NCBI RefSeq assembly: GCF_000143415.4
Contig: NW_003314372.1
Coordinates: 184,898 to 248,897, forward strand
Source: Selaginella moellendorffii
Taxonomy: Eukaryota > Plantae > Lycopodiophyta
Length of the DNA: 64,000 nt
Direction of reading: 5' to 3'
The notes beneath the pieces were generated by a model. The model was not told where the DNA came from, did not search any database, and saw only the letters and a program-made list of their open reading frames with translations. Of the stretch, positions 4,010 through 37,941 are shown one piece after another. A program made the translations under genes and the position numbers. Positions within the stretch are counted from its first letter, which is position 1, and each line of letters starts with the position of its first letter.

Positions 4010-4861
4010 ATGGGCGGATCGATCAGCGCGAGCCGGCGCGAGCTCCCCGACGGCGATGTGGTGGAGAAGCGGCTCGTCAAGGCGCTGCAGCAGCGCGCCG
4101 CGGCCGCCAAGAGCAGCGTCAAATCCTTCGACGCCATTCTCATGAAATTTTCCAAGATCGACATGGCCTTCGACCAAGTCCGTGACGTTTTCAAGCGATT
4201 TGGTACGTTTTTCCCCTTCTTTCTCTCTCGATCGAGCGAGTGCTGGATGGATCCTCGTGGCAGACAAGCACAAGAGAGGGACGATCGACCTCGAGCAGCT
4301 CAAGGCGTGTTTTCGAGAGCTCAAGGTTGAATTCACCGAAGAAGAGGTCCAGATGTTCTACGAGGAGGGCGATGTGGATCACAACCGGCGCATCAGTTTC
4401 AAGGAATTCATCGTTGTTCTTGCGCTAGCTTATCTCCTGGGCGAGCCTCTCAATTCCGATGGTGTAAGATCCAAATATCATTTTTTTCTCTTTGTTCTTT
4501 GCTCTAACCCGAGGTTTCTGTAGAAATCGAGGATTGGATTGCCGGACTTGGAGTGGAGCTTCGAGACGATCGAGGACGCGTTCGTCTTCTTTGACAAGAA
4601 TGGCGATGGCTACGTCACAAAGGAAGAGATGATCGAGTCCATCCACGAGTCCTCACACGCGACTAATACGCAACAGGATAGCATAGGCGTCGAGAGATTT
4701 GGTACGTGAATCCATCAAACTTCCATCACTTCCTTTTCAATCTCTTGCTTCTTCCAGAGGAAATGGATTGGGATAGAGATGGTAGAGTCACATTCAAGGA
4801 GTTCCTCCTAGCATTCACTGGCTGGGTTGGGATCGAAGACGATGAAGATCAAGAGGATTAA
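4010..4861 (+). CDS. EF-hand calcium-binding protein, CML21/22-like
   Basis: MGG start (possible myristoylation), SFDAILMKF.KID, EF loops DKHKRGTIDLEQ, DVDHNRRISFKE, DKNGDGYVTKEE, DWDRDGRVTFKE; ends FTGWVGIEDDEDQED*. Confidence 0.9.
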
Positions 4862-5037
4862 AACCAAGGTTCCATGAATTTTTTTTTTTCTCAAAGTTCT
4901 TCGACTAAAGTTTTGCTTTTTTTCTTTCTTGAATCATAGAATGGAGCAAACAAGAACTATACATAAGTTATCGTCAAGGTATTTCTTTCTAGACCCAACC
5001 AATGTTACGTATCATCAAGCTCCTTTTTATTCTAGTT

Positions 5038-8000
5038 CTAGCTGAGTGGAGCAAGATCCGGAACCATAGCCACAGTAACAACGAAGAACTCACAGCCGAT
5101 GCCAAGGCCATAAGGATTGTAGCGAGGCCTTGATGCTGCTGCTCCTCCGCCTCCTGGAGGAGGAGCTGCCGATGGTTCTCCAGTACTTGGCGATGGAACG
5201 CGCCTGGCAACGTTCCGGTTGATGTGAACAATCTGTCCGACGATGTACTGCTGGCCGCTCGGCAAATTCTCCAGGAACAGCGCGATCGACTCGTCGGACA
5301 AGTAGTAATTCGGGCAGTTCCTGTTGAGAGCTTCCCAGTGGCCGGCCGAGTTTGGCATGAACACGGCAAGCTCGTGAACTTCAAAGTGAGTGAAGCAGAT
5401 CTTTTCCTTCCTCGCCTGTAAAAAGTGTTCGATTGAAAAGAAAGACAAGTTTTAATAGTACCTGTTTCTCCAGCTTGTGCTTTGCATATAAGTTCTTCAG
5501 CATTTCAGCTTTGCTCTCGATGTCTTTGTTGAGATGACTCTGCGCTGCTTCCAACGAGCTACAGCGATCCATCATCTGCTGGAGGATCCCCGCAACTCGG
5601 TCGGCAAGAATCCTTATCGAGGACTGGAACTCCAGCAAGCACGGGTCCTCCCGGTTCTCACTGCCACCATTCGAAGGGCTGAAAGAAGAAAAAACGTGAG
5701 CTTCCACTAGAGAAAAAATGGTGACAAACCTGGACAGAGAATTCGAGAGCGTAGCTAGTGACTCCACGAAGCCAGCAGCTCCGTCCACTGGCGTTGAGAT
5801 GCAGTTATTCAGTCGTTCCATAAGGCCTCGGAGCCTCACGCTCGACGCTCTTAAGGACGCATACTCGGCCGCTCGGCGCTCGGCGGCACACAGATTAGTT
5901 CTTGCTTCTTCCCTGGCTTCGTGTAATCGATTCTCCAAGTGAGCACAGTTCATCTGAAAAGGCAGAGAGAGCTGCTGTTACCTCACGAGAACTGGACAAA
6001 CGAAAAACAAAATCAATCTATCCATACCTGGCATTCTCGCAAAAGTTCAGCGCTACATTCCACTTCTTCCTGCAGCTGAGCAGTCTTCGCAACGGCGTCT
6101 TTAAACTTCTCCTCCACTGCACTGAGCATCCGAGTCTTCTCGCTCAGAACAATTCCCAAGGCAGCTATCTCCTTGTCCTTCTCGCTCGCAGAGTCGCTCT
6201 CCTTTTCTCCCTTGTCTACCTCCAGTTTCTTGAGCGTTTCGGTTTCCACGACCATGTTCTCGTCAAGTCCTTCGTCGATCTGATCGCTAGCCTCTGTACA
6301 CGAACTCCCTAGACGAGCAAGCCTGCTGCTGCCTTCGTCCATCGGCTCAGCACTGCTCAAGTTTCGAACATTCGTCAGCCCAGAGTTCTCAGACAAATCA
6401 AGTATTTCTTTCTTGAGCCCACCACCTTCACCGTTTCCGCTCGACGACAGCTTTTCGATCTGCGCGTCCTGTTCTCTCAACCTCTGCTCGAGCTCTCTTA
6501 TCCGCTTCTCGTAAGCGTTGCATTGCTGCTGCCTCATATCCAGCATTCCATGCAGCTGCTTCGCATGTAAATCTTTGAGCTGCAATGCTTCCGCCGTCTT
6601 CCTGGCAGCAATAGTCTCCCGACTGTCACCTCCAGCCTTGCCTTGCTCACTCAGACCCTCCGACTCCTCGGGCTGGAAATCGGGATCCAAGTTGCACAGC
6701 ATGGAAATAGCCGAAGCAAGCTCCGCCTTTAACCACGTATTTTCCACCTCCAGTTTGCTAGTCCCTGCTATCTCTTCTAGCTCCCCATCATCTGTGCTAT
6801 CCGGTGCCCCCTCGGCTACTTTGTACAAGGCACCAACTAAAGACTCTGGAGCGTAGCGTTCCAGATCCGCCATATCTATGTCGAGCAGGCCCACGTCGAA
6901 CGGAGCAATATTTACAATGCACTGGCTGGGAGCGTCGAAGAGTCCCATGGCGGCCAACACGTCCCTCGGGATGTACAAGCTCTGCACCTGGAGAAATTCT
7001 TCCCTTCGGGCCATCTCCATCTCCCTCTTCCTTGCAAGCTTCTCAGCCAGTTGCCCCGCCTGTCCCATGTAAAGCTTCATGCAAGCTTTCCTCCTCACAA
7101 CCTCGGCAAGACACGCCTTGTAAGCGGAGCCAACCTTTCGGACAACCTTGAGCTCCTCGAAGATATCATCCTGTCGAGCCATGGCTTCTTTGAACGCTGA
7201 GAGTTGGTTTCTCATGTCTCGGATGCTTGCCTGGAGCGCTGCTACGCTTTGCATCCGCATATGGACCCCCATGCTCATCGCGTTCTTGCTCCTCCTACAC
7301 GTATCTAAAAGCTTCCACAGTTCTCGATCGCAGGCCTCCATCCTGGGTATGTGGCTCTTATCGTGAACTTCGTACATCGGTCCAAGAGCCGAGACGGCGT
7401 CGTGTGGACGAAGTGATGCTGTGTGCTGGCTATTCACGCAGTCGTCAATAAGCTTTCTTACGGTATTTACATCTTTGCTGCAAGAGCAAACACACAAAAA
7501 GGTTTAGAGAAGAAAAGAAAAGAGGTTTAAGATAAGACGCACCTAAGTGATTGAATGATGCTAGCCTGCTCCTCCTTGTAATGCAGGTGATTGTCAATTG
7601 TCTCCTCGAGCAGCCTCACGTCCACAGTTGAGCCAGTCACCAGCAAATCCTCCACACTCCTCTGGAGGATCACATACTCGTTCTTGAGCTGGGACACCTT
7701 GGCGAAGAACTGCTTATGCGACAAGGCACAGTCCTCCGCCCACTTCTTGAGGCTGCTTTCCTTCACACAATCCATCAACGTCTTCCTGCTCTCGGATTTC
7801 AATGCTGGATGCAACTTACACAAACGAAGGCGCTCCAAATCTTTGTCGAAGTTGGCCAGCAGCTCCGAGTGCTGCCGGTGCTGCCTCGTAAAGTGTTTCA
7901 TGAACTCCTGATAGAGCTGGTCGATCATCTTGTAGTAGTGCTCCATGTTGGCTCTGGCCGTCTCCAGCGCCATCTCCTGGACTTGCTGCTCGCGGTGTAA

Positions 8001-8462
8001 AGTTCTACACGCCTCAAACTTCTTCTGGCTGGAGCTCAAGATCCCACGACCCTTGTCGAGGTGGAACTTAAACTGGCGCTCGTAAGAAGGTAGAGCTCGC
8101 AGTGCCGGGTCTCTCGAGTCGTCCAAAGGGTGGCCATTCCCAGCAGTGGAAGACGGCTGTGGAGGGCACGGCGGCTCTCGTAGCGCCTCGGAAAATCTCT
8201 CCGCAAACTCTGCCTGTGGAGGGGGACAATCTGGGCTGAGCTTGTGGCGGCTGAAGAGAAACACTGCTCGATCCTGCGATGGCAAGCGATACGACCCAAG
8301 AGACCTGTGCGGCTCCAGCCGTGTATCCCCCACAATGAGGAGCTGCTCGTGCTGGAGAACACCCGTGAGCGATACGAGATAGCTCTGGACGTCCTCCACG
8401 CTCGTCGATGGCTGGCAATCCAGCTCAAACGAGAGCCCATTCTCCGCCACATGAATCAGCAT
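5038..8462 (-). CDS. ATG11: Autophagy-related protein 11 (ATG11/RB1CC1-like)
   Basis: N-terminal HVAENGLSFELDC, HPLDDSRDPALRALPSYERQF, long coiled coils, C-terminal ATG11 domain (NRNCPNYYLSDES...YIVGQIVHI...NPYGLGIGCEFFVVTVAMVPD). Confidence 0.95.
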
Positions 8463-9068
8463 GCTTGCGAGTGAAGATTACTCTGCCGCGATGGTAATTC
8501 TTCCGCTGGAGATGGATTCGAAAGACTGGGAATGCGCCAAAGCCCCTATGGCGATCCTAGGAACCCTAGTCCACGAAAATCCTTTCCTGACCTTGGATTT
8601 CGTGAAGGGCTTGGCGCTTCCTCCTCCTCCTCCTCCCTTCTCGCAGCCCTAACCCTGCCGCGCGGAGATGGAGCGCGCGCTGGGCGGCAGGGCGACGACG
8701 GCGTCGCTCATTCCTTCCCAATCTTCGTCCCGGCGCGCTCGCTCGCTCGCGGAGGATGGGACGAATCTATCCTCCTTCGATTCACACGGGAAACGCGGGC
8801 CATATTAACCTGGCGAATATCCGCCCGAAGATAGGGCAATGTTTTTAAAAGTTCTCGAATATCCTCTTATATCCTTTTCTTCTCAAACGGCTATGGCGGG
8901 CTAGGGATTGGCGAGATTGGCGCAAGCGCAGGCGTCGCGCGACCGCGATCACAATTCGCAATTCGCCCGCGAGCTGCTGTCCTCTCTTTTTTGCTGATTT
9001 GATGCGCGATCGTGATCCAGGCCTAGGGTTTCCATTAGCGAAAGGGAAAAGTAGCGTAGCCCAGCTAG

Positions 9069-10069: not shown

Positions 10070-11340
10070 ATGGCTTCCGAGAGTGTGAAGGATCCCAACT
10101 TCAAGCATGACTTGGATCTGCAGAAGCAGAATCATGCTATGGAAGTGGATTCACCTTGCTCTCCTCCCACACTGAGAAGCCTCTGCATTCCCAGGACAAG
10201 ATTCCGGAAGAGGGCTACATTGTGCCAGAAGGTCACTCTATCTTCCTGCTGTTCTTTCTCTGCTGATGCGCTTCCCTTTTGGTTGTATCAGCTCGGTGCA
10301 GAAGTCATTGCCACGTTCATCTTGGTATTCGCCGGTGCTGGCGCAGGAATGGTGAACGAACTCACAAACGGCTCGCTGACTTTCTTCGGAGTGGCGGCAG
10401 CAAACGGGCTCGTCGTTATGATGATGATTCATGCTACTGGTCATATCTCCGGGGCTCACATGAATCCTGCAGTTACCGTGGCTTTTGCAACTGTCCGACA
10501 CTTTCCTTGGGCTCAGGTAAAGCATCTGCGTGCTTTTCGAGCTTCGCTTCTCCAAGTCCTTTTATCTATTCATTGTTTAACCCTTTTGTTTTTGTCTGTG
10601 ACTCGTTCCAGGTGCCGCTGTACATTGGCTCCCAGATCGCCGCGTCAGTCAGCGCTTGCTTCGTGCTCCGGCAGCTTCTCACAGAAGTAAACAAGATTGG
10701 AGCGACAGTTCCTGCCGCTGGCAACGTGGTCCAAGCCTTGGTTTTGGAAATCATCGTCAGTTACATACTCATGTTTGTAGTGGCAGCGGTTTCCACTGAC
10801 ACTCGAGCCGTAAGATGCTAAACTCTTCCCCCTCTCTCAGCTCTCTAAGCGTGGTCCAGGTTGGAGAGCTGGCCGGACTCGCTGTTGGAGCTACAGTCGC
10901 GCTCAACAATCTCATTGCAGGGTACTCTTCCTTCTCTATTCATATACTTTCTCTCGATTTTGCATTTTTGTAGAGCTCCATGGAGGTAAGCTTTGGATCA
11001 TTCTCTTGCGATTGACCTTCGTTTTTGCAGGAGAAAACCATTCCCCGGGGCATAGTGGATTTGCGTTTTCCTTGGTGCTAAAGCTTTGGCTTGTTGGCTC
11101 TTGTGTTCGTCCAGGCCTCTTTCCGGAGCGTCGATGAATCCGGCCAGGAGCATCGGCCCGGCGGTGGCGAGGAACAACTATTCCGACGTGTGGATTTACA
11201 TTGTTGGACCTGTGCTCGGCACCTTGGGTGGGGCGTGGTCTTACAATCTCATCAGAACTGTTGACAAGAATTTGTCCTCCTCGCGCTCCTTTTCGTCTCG
11301 CTCTTTCAACAAGAGAGATCAAATCGCCCAAATGCTCTAG
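10070..11340 (+). CDS. NIP: NOD26-like intrinsic protein (NIP aquaporin)
   Basis: [13 protein letters not shown] and [14 protein letters not shown] (two NPA motifs), [21 protein letters not shown]; typical NIP intron positions. Confidence 0.95.
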
Positions 11341-12224
11341 AAGATAGAGTTTGTACAAGCATTTTCCGTACTCATAAACGCGCAGTACCGTACCGTTTAT
11401 CTGTGGGCTAGATCTTGGGCTTATTTCAAATTACAATGCTCATTAAAACTACACCTCACCAACTACCTTCAATTGGATCTTCATCTTATCATCAAGATTC
11501 GTTGCCAAGAACCCTAAACTTGGCCTATGTCCGCCCAATCAGAGAATCTTGATCAAGCAATGGTGATCTTCCAATGTAATCCTTGACCGATCAAAGCTCC
11601 AAACGGACCTATGCGATCCAGGAGACGGCTACAGCGATTCCTGTGGAGTGACCACAAGCTTCCACAATTTCTCGTGGGGGCCGGTGGCCGGGGTGGTGGT
11701 GGAATTTTGAGCGGACAAGATCTGTAGGGAGTCTATGAGGACCATCGTGCTTGCCCGGAGCTACATGCCTCAGGTGGCGGGCTCCAGCTCGGCGATCGAT
11801 CGGGCGTAACAACAGAGTGATCGATCTAAAACATGGATTGGATCATCGTTGTGACGATCGCCATGGCTCGAGGCGGTGAAAGAAGAGAACTTTGCCTTTA
11901 CGTGAAGATGTGGAGCAAACGAACTCATTTGGGAGAGACGTGGGTGGTCTACTGGAGCGCTCAATGGCGAGTGGTGGGAGCTGGGGTGATCGGATCAAAT
12001 GGCTGCTCCAGGATTTCCTCCCAGCTGATTCAAGCCCGTCCCGAACTATGCGAGTTCTTCCAATTTTCGCGTTTCGCCATAGCCTAACCCTAAATGATAG
12101 AATATGCTAATTGTAAACAAAGCTGCTTGTTCGAAGATCTCGGGATAGATCAGTCTCACTGGCATCAAAGATAACTTTTCTATTTATCTCTCGATTGATC
12201 ACGCAAGGTTTTCAAGGTAACAGA

Positions 12225-13049
12225 ATGGGGGTTTGGTGGCATGACAATTTAAGATGGCAGAAATATAGTTCCGACTTGTCTTCAAAGATCATGGCTGCGA
12301 AGAACTCCGGGGCCACGACCCTTGATCTCGGTGTCATTTTTTCCAGATCCCACCCTACAGGAGATTCATACCGCATTGACTTTGGCACTATGAAACAGAT
12401 CAACACAAGAACTGGTTGCAAGCGGTCTGTCAAGATTGTCTACTCGTGGCGAGGAGAGGCATCAAATTCCAGAATCACAGCCAAGATGGTCAGCCGAGAT
12501 GATGCTGTTTTGCTTCTGGACAATCTTTTGGATACGGAGCTCATGGAGATCATCGTGCCAGAGTTGCAAAGACAGTTCCCAAGGATACAGAGTGTTACTC
12601 CAAACCCGTTTCTGCAGGGTGGCGTCAGGAGCACCCATGGACGCTACCTCCAGTTCTGCAAGGCTCTCAGAGATCAAGGTGGCGGGCTTCGTAAGCTTGA
12701 TGTTTGCTTCCATGGGAGCCCCGCGGAGAACCTTTCGTCCATTTTACAGTTTGGTCTGGATCCGTCAAAAACCAGGTACCAGGTGTTGTACTTTGCGACG
12801 GACCCATCCGTGTCTGTTCCATATTGCCGCGTCAAGCCTGGGATGGGATCAGTCACCATGATATTACTCTTGCAGATTCCCAAAGTTGCAAGTGATAATG
12901 GAGAATCAGTTCGTACATTACCAGTCTCCATGCCAGAGTGCCTGCTTCCAATTGGGACTTGTGTAGTCTCACAAGAGCAAAATAACGAGAAAGTGAGCAA
13001 AAAATCAAGAGGCATCATGAATTTCTTTAAAAACATCTTATTTGTTTAA
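12225..13049 (+). CDS. Intronless WWE-domain + PARP/ADP-ribosyltransferase-like domain protein (274 aa)
   Basis: WWHDNLRWQKYS...YRIDFGTMKQINTRTGCKRSVK matches the WWE pattern. CFHGSPAENLSSILQFGLDP...LYFATDPSVSVPY matches the ART H-Y NAD-binding motifs. First ATG at 12225. Confidence 0.75.
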   Translation: MGVWWHDNLRWQKYSSDLSSKIMAAKNSGATTLDLGVIFSRSHPTGDSYRIDFGTMKQINTRTGCKRSVKIVYSWRGEASNSRITAKMVSRDDAVLLLDNLLDTELMEIIVPELQRQFPRIQSVTPNPFLQGGVRSTHGRYLQFCKALRDQGGGLRKLDVCFHGSPAENLSSILQFGLDPSKTRYQVLYFATDPSVSVPYCRVKPGMGSVTMILLLQIPKVASDNGESVRTLPVSMPECLLPIGTCVVSQEQNNEKVSKKSRGIMNFFKNILFV

Positions 13050-13170
13050 GGCAGTTTTAAAATTAAAATTTATATTTGCAATAAATTCCTTGAACTTCTC
13101 CAAGTATCAGATTCTCACGATATCATAGAAGGATTCCCATTCAAACTTTGATACCACAATCTTTGCTAAC

Positions 13171-35394: not shown

Positions 35395-37941
35395 TCATTC
35401 CTTCTTGGTTCTCTTGCTCGTGCGCTTCACTTTTGGAGAGTTAGTCGTAGTTTTGGATGTCAGCCTGGACAGAGGCTTGCTGGAATCTACTACCGAGCAA
35501 AGTCAATAAAAAACACGATGAGAAATGGTCTCACCTGTGATGTCCGATCCTTCCTTGCCGCGTGTGTTCTTCCGAACAGGTGTACCGCGAGAGGTTTTGG
35601 TAGTCACCACACCGTCCTCCACCGTTTCCTCAGGGGTGTTGCAAGAGCCTTTGTAAGGTGCCATGTAGCAGAACCTGGAAAGCCAGTGAGGAATCGCCCG
35701 AGGTGGAAAAAAAAAAAAAAAAACAACGAACCAATGGTCTGGCAACTGTCCATGCCATTCCGGATCCATCACCCTCCACTTGAGGCATTTGGAGCACTGG
35801 ACCCAGTTTTTGTCGGGGGCAAGCCCCTCCTTCTCCTCCTTCAACAAAAGGATAGACACTTAGTGATAGTCCTCGTAGAAACTAGCAGTGCTTACCGTGG
35901 TTAACTTCTCCACGCGAGTTTCCCAGTACTTGTCAGCTTCCTCCCCGAGCCATTTCTCCATAGCAGCATACATCTCACAGTCCTCGAAGCCCTGCTTGCT
36001 ATTCAACACGCCTACTCTGCCTCTGTCAAACTCCTGCATGGCCGACATTATCGTTTCAACTCTATATGCAAAGTTGTACCATCAGTTTGGTCGTTTCCAC
36101 GACACCAATCACTCCTCGTCCCCATTCAGCACTGTGCACCATATTTCCAACCCTTTTGTAGGACTGTTCGAAGAGATGCACGACGACGGTGAGAGAGCCA
36201 ACAAGTAAAACATACCTCGACAAGTCTGCCGTGCCAGTAGAGGAAAATACCACAGTTTCCGCGCTTCCGCTCTAGCTCCATTACGCCCAGAGTCAGCTGG
36301 ACTGGTTTCCCCATGAGAGTAGCACTGGTCACCCAGGTGCTGTTTAGCGTCTTGGCGAGACATTTTGTTGTCACCTAAAGAACAAAACAGCCAAGTCCAT
36401 CAAAGAACCACTCAAACTGGATCCTCAGACCTTCTTCCCCTGGATCGAAACAATCATGCGTGGCTCCAAAAACATGACTTCCACATAAGCTCGAAGCGAA
36501 TAGTCGAGCGGGACCTGTCATGGACACTGGTTTTGGAAGACGGCGTACGAGAGATGGAATATATCCTACCTCGGGGCTTGTTTGTCCAGGTCGACTCCGC
36601 ACGCGCCTAGACCTTATCATGATGTCATCACTTTCGTTCCAGTCCAAGGAGAAAGACGACCCCCATTTCTCGAGATCGAAAACGTAAATGATAGTCCCCG
36701 TTTCGCCTGCGAGCCTTTGAAACTCAGCACCAATTCCATACTCGTCAAAAGGTCCGTATGTGCATATCACGTCTCGATGCTTTTGTGAGTCTTCCAGCGT
36801 CTGCAAACCGGTGTCGATATCCATTCTGCCCGCCCGTCTGGTATACGTGACAATCGGCACCTCGAGGACCTGCATTGTTGCCAAACTTTTAGTACCTTAG
36901 AGACACGAGAACACGAGCAAGGCGGTACATCTTTGCCTTCGTTATAGCCAGTTGAGAGCAGTGCCATTGACCTCGTCTCCTTGCTTTGCGTGAGGACAAG
37001 GGCACCTCTACCGAGACGCATCACCCCTGTCTGATTTACAAACAAAGAAACCAGTAAACAAGAGATTGAGAAAAGGAAAAGAAATGAGAACCTTGAAGCC
37101 AACTCCAAACCTCCCGATTTGCTCTGGATCGTCTTGTTCGGGTTTCTTGTGGCCAAAAGACACCATCTTCACAATGTCTTTGTGAGTCATCCCAAGGCCA
37201 TCGTCCAGGAAACAAAGCATCGGCACTTCTGATACCTCGGGGCTTTTCAACGTTCCCATCTGAATCGAAATCTCAAGACTGGAAGAGTGGCTATCAGTTC
37301 ATGCACGAGAAAAGTTAAAGATAGCTCACCGCTTGGCTCCCGCATCGCAGGCGTTGTCAATGAGCTCGGCGACTGCACCAAAGAGCCAACTCGAATGCGT
37401 CTGGCTGAGCGTGGTGAGGTACTCCGGGTGCATTTGCGCGATCGGCCTCTTGGCTGGCCCGGGCCTGGCGCGGTAGGCAACGTCCACAAGCTTCATTATC
37501 TTCTTGGTGGCCTCGTTCTCCTCCGCCGGTGGCTTCAAGAGAAGCTGGACGTCTCCGACATTGATGACCGCAACCTGGTCGAGTGCGTGTATAGTGCGTG
37601 TGAGAGAGACAGAGAAAGACATCTCTTACCCGGGAGTGATCGACGAGAAAGGTGAGCAGCTTATCCCACTCCCGGTAGTCACTCTCGCCACGGGCCATGA
37701 TCTGGAACAGCGGAAGAGGCTTCCAATCGAACGCGCGAGCTGCATTGAAAGCAACGATGTCGAGGCGCTTGGGCCTGATCGAGCGAGGGAAAAAGGCGGG
37801 AAGACGAATGAGAAGCGCAAAACCAAAGCTTACGCACAGCTCCAATGGCGCATTCGAGGAGCACACCGCGCATATGTGCTTGGCGTCGACGTTGAAAAGC
37901 CTGCCGTTCCATGCCTTGGGAGTGCGCGGCGGGAGGACCAT
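35395..37941 (-). CDS. MORC: MORC-family GHKL ATPase with S5 fold and CW zinc finger; extra N-terminal SPOC-like domain
   Basis: HPEYLTTLSQTHSSWLFGAVAELIDNACDA, DDGLGM, IGRFGVGFKTGVMRLG, SLRAYVEVMF, GIFLYWHGRLVE, VGVLNSKQGF; CW: WVQCSKCLKWR...LPDHWFC...SCNTPEE; basic tail to TGA 35395. Confidence 0.92.

Follow-up and report, generated by a model that had tools for sequence, protein, structure and literature searches.

The WWE-PARP gene at the locus

The window analysed here, a 64,000-nucleotide stretch of the Selaginella moellendorffii genome, carries on its forward strand an intronless gene for a protein with a WWE domain followed by a PARP-type ADP-ribosyltransferase (ART) domain. The open reading frame (ORF) starts with the ATG at 12225, ends with the stop codon at 13047–13049 and encodes 274 residues without any internal stop or frameshift, which bears out the 274-residue intronless frame that an earlier note had read from the letters of this DNA. 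The locus very probably holds a real, constrained gene of the WWE-PARP family. Its features, with the support for each in brackets, are:

12225..13049, + strand: complete intronless coding sequence, 274 codons plus stop (ORF list, sequence, and an allelic copy 98.2% identical without indels)
12225..12440, + strand: WWE domain, residues 1–72 (Pfam PF02825, AlphaFold, Foldseek)
12441..12533, + strand: linker, residues 73–103, with 76–89 predicted to be disordered and followed by a helix (predicted local distance difference test, pLDDT, <50 for 76–89)
12534..12977, + strand: compact PARP-type ART domain, residues 104–251 (partial Pfam PF00644 match, VIA-align)
12711..12713, + strand: codon of the first PARP triad residue, His163 in FHGS (lines up with HGT of PARP12 and Tpt1 in the family profile)
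12789..12791, + strand: codon of Tyr189 (LYFA), second triad residue (family profile aligns it with YFA of PARP12)
12813..12824, + strand: Ser197-x-x-Tyr200, the S-x-x-Y motif (conserved in nearly all relatives, aligns with the PARP12 segment)
12903..12917, + strand: Glu227–Thr231, candidates for the third triad position (alignments disagree; pLDDT ~65)
12978..13046, + strand: lineage-specific C-terminal tail, residues 252–274, a low-confidence helix (pLDDT 30–53)

This gene is intact, and purifying selection acts on it. Between the haplotypes, 15 of the 825 ORF positions differ (98.2% identity) and there is no indel, whereas the flanks (800 nt upstream and 100 nt downstream) are 89–93% identical and contain about 15 gap openings. 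Eight of the 15 differences are synonymous and seven non-synonymous, giving a ratio of non-synonymous to synonymous polymorphism (pN/pS) of 0.25 with a binomial P of 0.009 under neutrality. Frameshifts in the other haplotype, which the earlier note had proposed to look for, are absent, and the ORF is intact there as well. Specifically, the core ART region (residues 155–251) contains five differences, all of them synonymous, and four of the seven replacements (W4L, S16P, L33F and F39V) fall in the WWE domain, with W4L lying in the other haplotype. This split between the WWE and ART domains involves small numbers and was chosen after seeing the data; the clustering of replacements in the WWE domain could be due to chance, or to selection on the reader domain that is either relaxed or diversifying.

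The sole close database match of the ORF is the GenBank protein EFJ08170 (SELMODRAFT_429141), which is 99% identical over the first 185 residues; an NCBIfam scan of the 274-residue protein gave no match, and a word-based protein search with the single protein matched only its own annotation. EFJ08170 drops 100 nt (12776–12875), which shifts the frame and replaces the YFA strand, the S-x-x-Y helix and the central strand by unrelated sequence. We regard this intron as an annotation error because the skipped stretch aligns with conserved motifs of the algal relatives. Additionally, the allelic model EFJ12273 (GL377640.1) reads unspliced across the same stretch and ends where the window ORF ends, and the single haplotype difference within it is synonymous. 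The 213-residue GenBank model with its 100-nt intron is thus, as judged from sequence, wrong, and the 274-residue ORF corrects it. At the 5′ side, the allelic 310-residue model has a further exon (6001–6280 at that locus), whose counterpart in the window is out of frame after WLLQ and has a stop in the allelic frame. We take the ATG at 12225 as the start for this reason, and the 5′ exon of the allelic model is probably an untranslated leader or a prediction artefact. An exon for the leader M-C-x..C-A-D-P ('MC..CADP'), which is found in the family, was absent from the 900 nt upstream in any + frame. The features concerned, together with a possible polyadenylation signal, are:

12776..12875, + strand: 'intron' of the GenBank model EFJ08170 (213 residues), in fact coding (motif loss, allelic model, haplotype comparison)
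11964..12053, + strand: counterpart of the 5′ exon of the allelic 310-residue model, non-coding in this haplotype (frame and stop)
13080..13085, + strand: AATAAA, possible polyadenylation signal 31 nt past the stop (sequence reading only)

A decaying or non-functional copy, with an ORF that is still open but unused, would fit the missing 'MC..CADP' leader, the W4L replacement in the other haplotype, the long branch of the gene in the tree given below and the absence of its exact product from transcript-derived collections. This explanation is nevertheless quite improbable, since the 825-nt ORF is free of indels in both haplotypes against the gap openings of its flanks, and pN/pS is well below neutrality at the P value given above.

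The gene lies between a spliced MIP aquaporin gene upstream (10070–11340, + strand) and a convergent syntaxin/SNARE gene (13171–~14900, − strand). At the allelic locus the corresponding positions are 4204–5477 for the aquaporin, 6281–7105 for the WWE-PARP ORF and 7230–8947 for the syntaxin. Farther out lie ATG11, PP5 phosphatase, TOM5, Romo1 and TMEM131-like genes, and the gene order is equal in both haplotypes. The neighbours had been described as intron-rich, and the aquaporin, syntaxin and PP5 genes indeed span more than their coding lengths in the allelic annotation. Searching six-frame pieces of the 64-kb window with a family hidden Markov model (HMM) revealed no other copy or relic of the gene; a weak tblastn match at 37099–37272 (E 1.8), considered as a further copy, was not confirmed.

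Domain structure of the predicted protein

The N-terminal region matches Pfam PF02825 over residues 4–70 (profile positions 3–66 of 67), with 40.5 bits against a cut-off of 21.1. An AlphaFold2 model built with a 45-sequence family alignment (mean pLDDT 81.6) adopts the WWE fold over residues 1–72 with pLDDT 89–98, and Foldseek pairs this part with the WWE domains of HUWE1 and TRIP12, which were solved with ADP-ribose/ATP, at probability 1.00, target TM 0.73–0.80 and ~30% identity. The N-terminus that the earlier note had called WWE-like is therefore a WWE domain by both its full-length profile match and its fold, and the motifs quoted there are all present: WW at 4–5, YRIDF at 49, KQIN at 57, FHGS at 162, LYFA at 188 and SVPY at 197. 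The domain also contains Y49, Q58 and R67, consensus residues of the family, which are by motif position candidates for the ADP-ribose-contacting Tyr, Gln and Arg known from RNF146. It resembles the WWE domains of HUWE1, TRIP12, Deltex and RNF146 in fold and in the pattern W..W..Y, Y-x-I-D-F, M-x-Q-x-N and G-x-x-R. Those domains sit in an E3 ligase context, whereas the WWE domain of the window gene is fused to an ART domain, and the family, unlike them, has an insertion of about seven residues (S..HP.G) before the Y-x-I-D-F strand.

The ART domain matches Pfam PF00644 over residues 155–214, covering only positions 46–113 of 199 in the profile, with 28.7 bits against a cut-off of 26.7, so that both profiles named for checking in the earlier note score above their gathering cut-offs. 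At E≤10 the Pfam scan found nothing besides PF02825 and PF00644, neither RST nor PF01885; this domain content agrees with the proposal that WWE and ART stand alone here, outside the PARP1–3 and RCD1/SRO architectures. In the AlphaFold2 model, the WWE domain (1–72) and a disordered linker (76–89) are followed by six strands and four helices within about residues 104–251, and by a low-confidence helix (254–274). Only 23 residues remain after the ART domain, and most relatives stop directly after the last ART strand.

By Foldseek the second domain matches catalytic fragments of PARP12, PARP15, PARP10 and PARP14. VIA-align places PARP12 first, with a Z score of 13.9 and a root-mean-square deviation of 2.8 over 138 of 183 residues (model range 104–251), and the structural comparison suggested in the earlier note recovers a PARP fold. 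The other matches span Z 12.3–13.3, among them PARP14, PARP15 and PARP10 at ~13, the PARP domain of RCD1 (5ngo) at 12.8 and tankyrase-2 (TNKS2) at 12.5. Because these scores tie, the fold alone picks no PARP clade. A Tpt1 chain is not among the 50 best structural matches.

Compared with a normal PARP domain, ~45 residues are missing after the central strand and ahead of the final two. Specifically, the connection from the central strand (209–217) to the next strand is only ten residues long, in the place where other PARPs carry the acceptor or ADP-ribosylating turn–turn (ARTT) region; ten residues also lie between position 217 and E227. The family is thus not minimal in the sense of having lost domains, as the earlier description might be taken to mean; what is shortened is the compact ART core itself.

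In the family profile, F-H-G-T, G-x-Y-F-A and S-x-x-Y line up with their PARP12 counterparts. The window protein keeps H163-G164-S165, Y189 and S197/Y200, which are conserved in nearly all relatives; at least 90% of 39 relatives have the His at position 163, and Y, W or F occupies the position of Tyr189. In PARPs the S-x-x-Y motif contacts the nicotinamide. The loop before Y189 is three to four residues shorter than in the relatives and is without their G-x-G-E/D (GEYF), which confirms, by alignment with relatives, the earlier observation that the Gly-rich G-x-G before YF is replaced. The third triad position depends on the alignment. BLASTP against the Selaginella paralogue places S228 at the polar position that follows a Gly in the family, whereas MAFFT and BLASTP against the relative P0064 place R230 there; E227 is adjacent, and hmmalign treats G226-E227 as an insertion, in a stretch with pLDDT ~65. 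We considered E227 as the catalytic Glu and withdrew this reading because the alignments disagree and point to S228 or R230. Across the family this position varies among S, E, D, N, H and K. The third triad residue is Glu in polymerases and Ile, Leu, Thr or Tyr in mono-ARTs, and the variability seen here resembles mono-ARTs or inactive members, not polymerases.

Relatives, origin and family placement

Exhaustively searched with phmmer, 1.84 billion cluster representatives yielded only 85 proteins at E≤0.001, of which 24 were assigned to organisms. Among these 24, the same architecture recurs in streptophyte algae (Mesotaenium, Chara braunii, Netrium, Klebsormidium nitens and Closterium), in lycophytes (Diphasiastrum, and Selaginella with a second gene, EFJ08533/EFJ11172) and in gymnosperms (Cryptomeria, Ginkgo and Welwitschia), and none of the 24 is an angiosperm protein or an SRO. 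A word-based search with a 19-sequence family profile, limited to 8000 candidates, added only a few gymnosperm-like proteins. In a scan of 39 relatives, PF00644 also matches 31 (best E 3.7e-14), an RST domain is found in none, and PF01885 (Tpt1/KptA) matches three weakly (E 0.0018). As far as sequence comparison tells, these proteins of streptophyte algae, lycophytes and gymnosperms form a second WWE-PARP lineage, apparently the older one, that is distinct from RCD1/SRO. For 40 ART domains, maximum likelihood gave a star-like tree in which 16 of the 37 inner branches have no support; it leaves the window gene unplaced.

The relatives differ in gene structure. The Klebsormidium nitens gene is spliced (3050 nt for 417 residues), and in the Selaginella paralogue a single intron of ~46 nt directly precedes F-H-G-T; the window gene has none. 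In Klebsormidium nitens (DF236955.1) two spliced members, GAQ77965 and GAQ77964, lie in tandem within a locus of 7050 nt, and duplication in the WWE-PARP family would therefore be old and recurrent. A metagenomic subgroup (P0025, P0055, P0056, P0066, P0073, P0078 and P0084) has the same short ART without a WWE domain, and carries a conserved coiled-coil tail ending in '..ISWY.H......FYFPDLP'.

The earlier note had allowed for a retro- or horizontal origin. Acquisition from a non-plant donor could draw on the ART-only metagenome relatives, which score as high as the plant ones, and on the intronless state of a gene among spliced neighbours. However, the best whole-length matches of the same architecture are streptophyte, a paralogue in the same genome contains a short intron and the homologues in Klebsormidium are spliced, the GC content of the gene resembles that of its surroundings, and the gene is syntenic in both haplotypes. 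We favour vertical descent because the same-architecture relatives are streptophyte, being algae, lycophytes and gymnosperms, and consider horizontal transfer so improbable that this part of the proposal is given up. A retro-origin also goes unsupported, as the locus has no poly-A tract and no flanking direct repeats or target-site duplication, and a single 12-nt direct repeat is of chance size. The intronless state may stem from intron loss or retroposition.

In surveys of PARPs, the only clades with land-plant members are Clade 1, Clade 2 (SRO) and Clade 6, the last in moss (PMC2964712; PMC4245714). The present family contrasts with reviews in which the plant WWE domain is said to occur only in RCD1/SRO1 (PMC10115779) and the WWE-bearing PARP Clade 3 to have no plant members (PMC2964712). 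We found no description of a family with WWE and a short PARP domain in the plant PARP/SRO papers searched, in line with the suggestion that it is an undescribed plant family.

The window protein shares with Arabidopsis RCD1/SRO1 the order of a plant WWE domain followed by a PARP fold, and its structural similarity to RCD1 (5ngo, Z 12.8) ties with that to human PARPs. A truncated copy of an SRO or RCD1 gene that has lost its RST domain might be derived from these likenesses, but it is very improbable on several grounds. None of the 39 relatives has an RST domain, and only PF02825 and PF00644 are found in the window protein itself at E≤10. SROs are reported from land plants only (PMC2964712; PMC6908617), a restriction not shared by the present family with its members in Klebsormidium, Chara, Mesotaenium, Netrium and Closterium. 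Additionally, the protein is without the long disordered regions of RCD1/SRO1, has half their length, and keeps the His and Tyr. When family profiles were run against PDB sequences, PARP12, PARP10, ZAP/PARP13, PARP16 and PARP15 came ahead of tankyrase and PARP1; PARP12, 10, 13, 15, 16 and 1 are inside the best 60 PDB sequences, and RCD1 is not among them for either profile. In the ESM Atlas, PARP11-like and PARP12 clusters lie closest (0.93–0.94), with the Streptophyta WWE_5/PARP clusters (0.88–0.89) below them. We do not file the gene under SRO because it has no RST domain, its family occurs in streptophyte algae, and RCD1 is absent from the best profile matches.

The profile ranking may be read as a pointer to Clade 3, but only a suggestive one. 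The human Clade 3 mono-ADP-ribosyltransferases PARP11 and, in their WWE-ART part, PARP12 and PARP7 have the WWE domain directly N-terminal to the PARP domain as in the window protein; PARP11 also falls into the same size class of ~300 residues and keeps the H-Y residues of the NAD site. PARP12 is both the best structural match (Z 13.9) and the best PARP sequence match of the family profile (E 6e-6). PARP11/12 differ from the window protein, whose ART domain is ~45 residues shorter, has no Gly-rich loop and an uncertain third triad residue, and is only 14–19% identical to theirs. Tpt1/KptA shares the compact ART core, and its H-G-T segment scores highest of all PDB sequences against the ART profile (33 residues, E 2.4e-6). 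The match is limited to this segment, however; the window protein has no PF01885 match and carries an N-terminal WWE domain instead of an RNA-binding lobe.

Predicted function and its rivals

We consider it probable, if narrowly so, that this is a functional nuclear gene of the streptophyte family whose product, with its WWE domain and shortened ART domain, both reads ADP-ribose and acts as a mono-ADP-ribosyltransferase in the manner of PARP11/12. The ligand of the WWE domain would contain ADP-ribose, as units of poly(ADP-ribose) (PAR) or as a terminal ADP-ribose or nucleotide; the bound WWE domain would recruit or regulate the short ART domain, which would take NAD+ and pass on ADP-ribose one unit at a time. 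We would expect mono- rather than poly-transfer, since the family does not conserve a Glu as third triad residue and its acceptor/ARTT region is shorter by ~45 residues. As for catalysis itself, we give activity of the predicted ART domain about even odds, or slightly less.

Several results weigh against a functional reader and transferase. Tyr189 is not preceded by a Gly-rich loop, the alignments disagree on the third triad residue, which may be Ser or Arg, and the ART core is without about a quarter of a normal PARP domain, its acceptor/ARTT region being truncated. Four non-synonymous differences, among them W4L in the other haplotype, lie within residues 1–72, all of them in the WWE domain. 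The branch of the gene in the tree of 40 ART domains is very long, at 2.18 changes per site, and a protein collection with transcript-derived assemblies does not contain the exact 274-residue product. Finally, the catalytic His is lost in gymnosperm and Diphasiastrum relatives, and the conserved role of the family may therefore not need catalysis.

The lost His deserves a closer description. In the Ginkgo, Welwitschia and related Logan proteins (P0009, P0013, P0017 and P0028) and in Diphasiastrum (P0007), the WWE domain is well conserved and the His motif is replaced by F-K-G-S, L-F-K-S or N-A-P, and these His-less members are likely pseudoenzymes, as far as their motifs can tell. The His is kept in both Selaginella genes, in Cryptomeria and in the algal proteins.

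The main rival explanation is that the window protein is likewise a reader-only pseudoenzyme, with a WWE domain for reading ADP-ribose and a PARP-like domain that serves as a catalytically dead scaffold or ligand-binding module, as reported for RCD1. RCD1 and SRO1 have no PARP or mono-ADP-ribosyltransferase (MART) activity, and RCD1 binds PAR through its WWE domain (PMC10115779). The rival gains from the third triad position that is not clearly Glu, from the missing Gly-rich loop and truncated acceptor region, and from the His-less relatives that nevertheless conserve their WWE domain. It loses from the retention of His163, Gly164, Tyr189 and Ser197/Tyr200, which sets the window protein apart from its degenerate relatives, and from the haplotype differences, five synonymous and no non-synonymous in the ART core against four non-synonymous in the WWE domain. 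Human mono-ARTs are likewise without the triad Glu. Taken together, we hold a pure reader to be possible but doubtful, and keep to the predicted reader and mono-transferase.

A bolder version of the transferase reading is that the ART core (~130–150 residues) is an active, near-minimal PARP-type transferase that works without the acceptor/ARTT region and is guided by the WWE domain onto non-protein targets, for example phosphorylated RNA or DNA ends. ADP-ribosylation of such ends has been shown for human PARP10, PARP11, PARP15 and TRPT1 (PMC6582358). We regard this version as unlikely; if true, the protein would be the first catalytically competent plant WWE-PARP 'reader-writer', and possibly kin of the stock behind RCD1/SRO.

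Plant ADP-ribosylation biology has so far rested on PARP1–3 and the inactive RCD1/SRO proteins. The window protein is small and easily expressed, and suits testing whether plants have a PARP11-like mono-ADP-ribosyltransferase; it also bears on the capabilities of a PARP domain that has no acceptor loop, and on how the family relates to the origin of RCD1.

Among the relatives, the Logan proteins P0010 and P0016 show a different arrangement, with the same 'MC..CADP..GVYW' leader and a WWE domain, after which a further WWE-like region and a Cys/His motif of RING type take the place of the ART domain. From these motifs they may be WWE-E3 ligases of the same lineage; if they prove to come from plants, they would run counter to the view that WWE domains and E3 ligases are not combined in plants.

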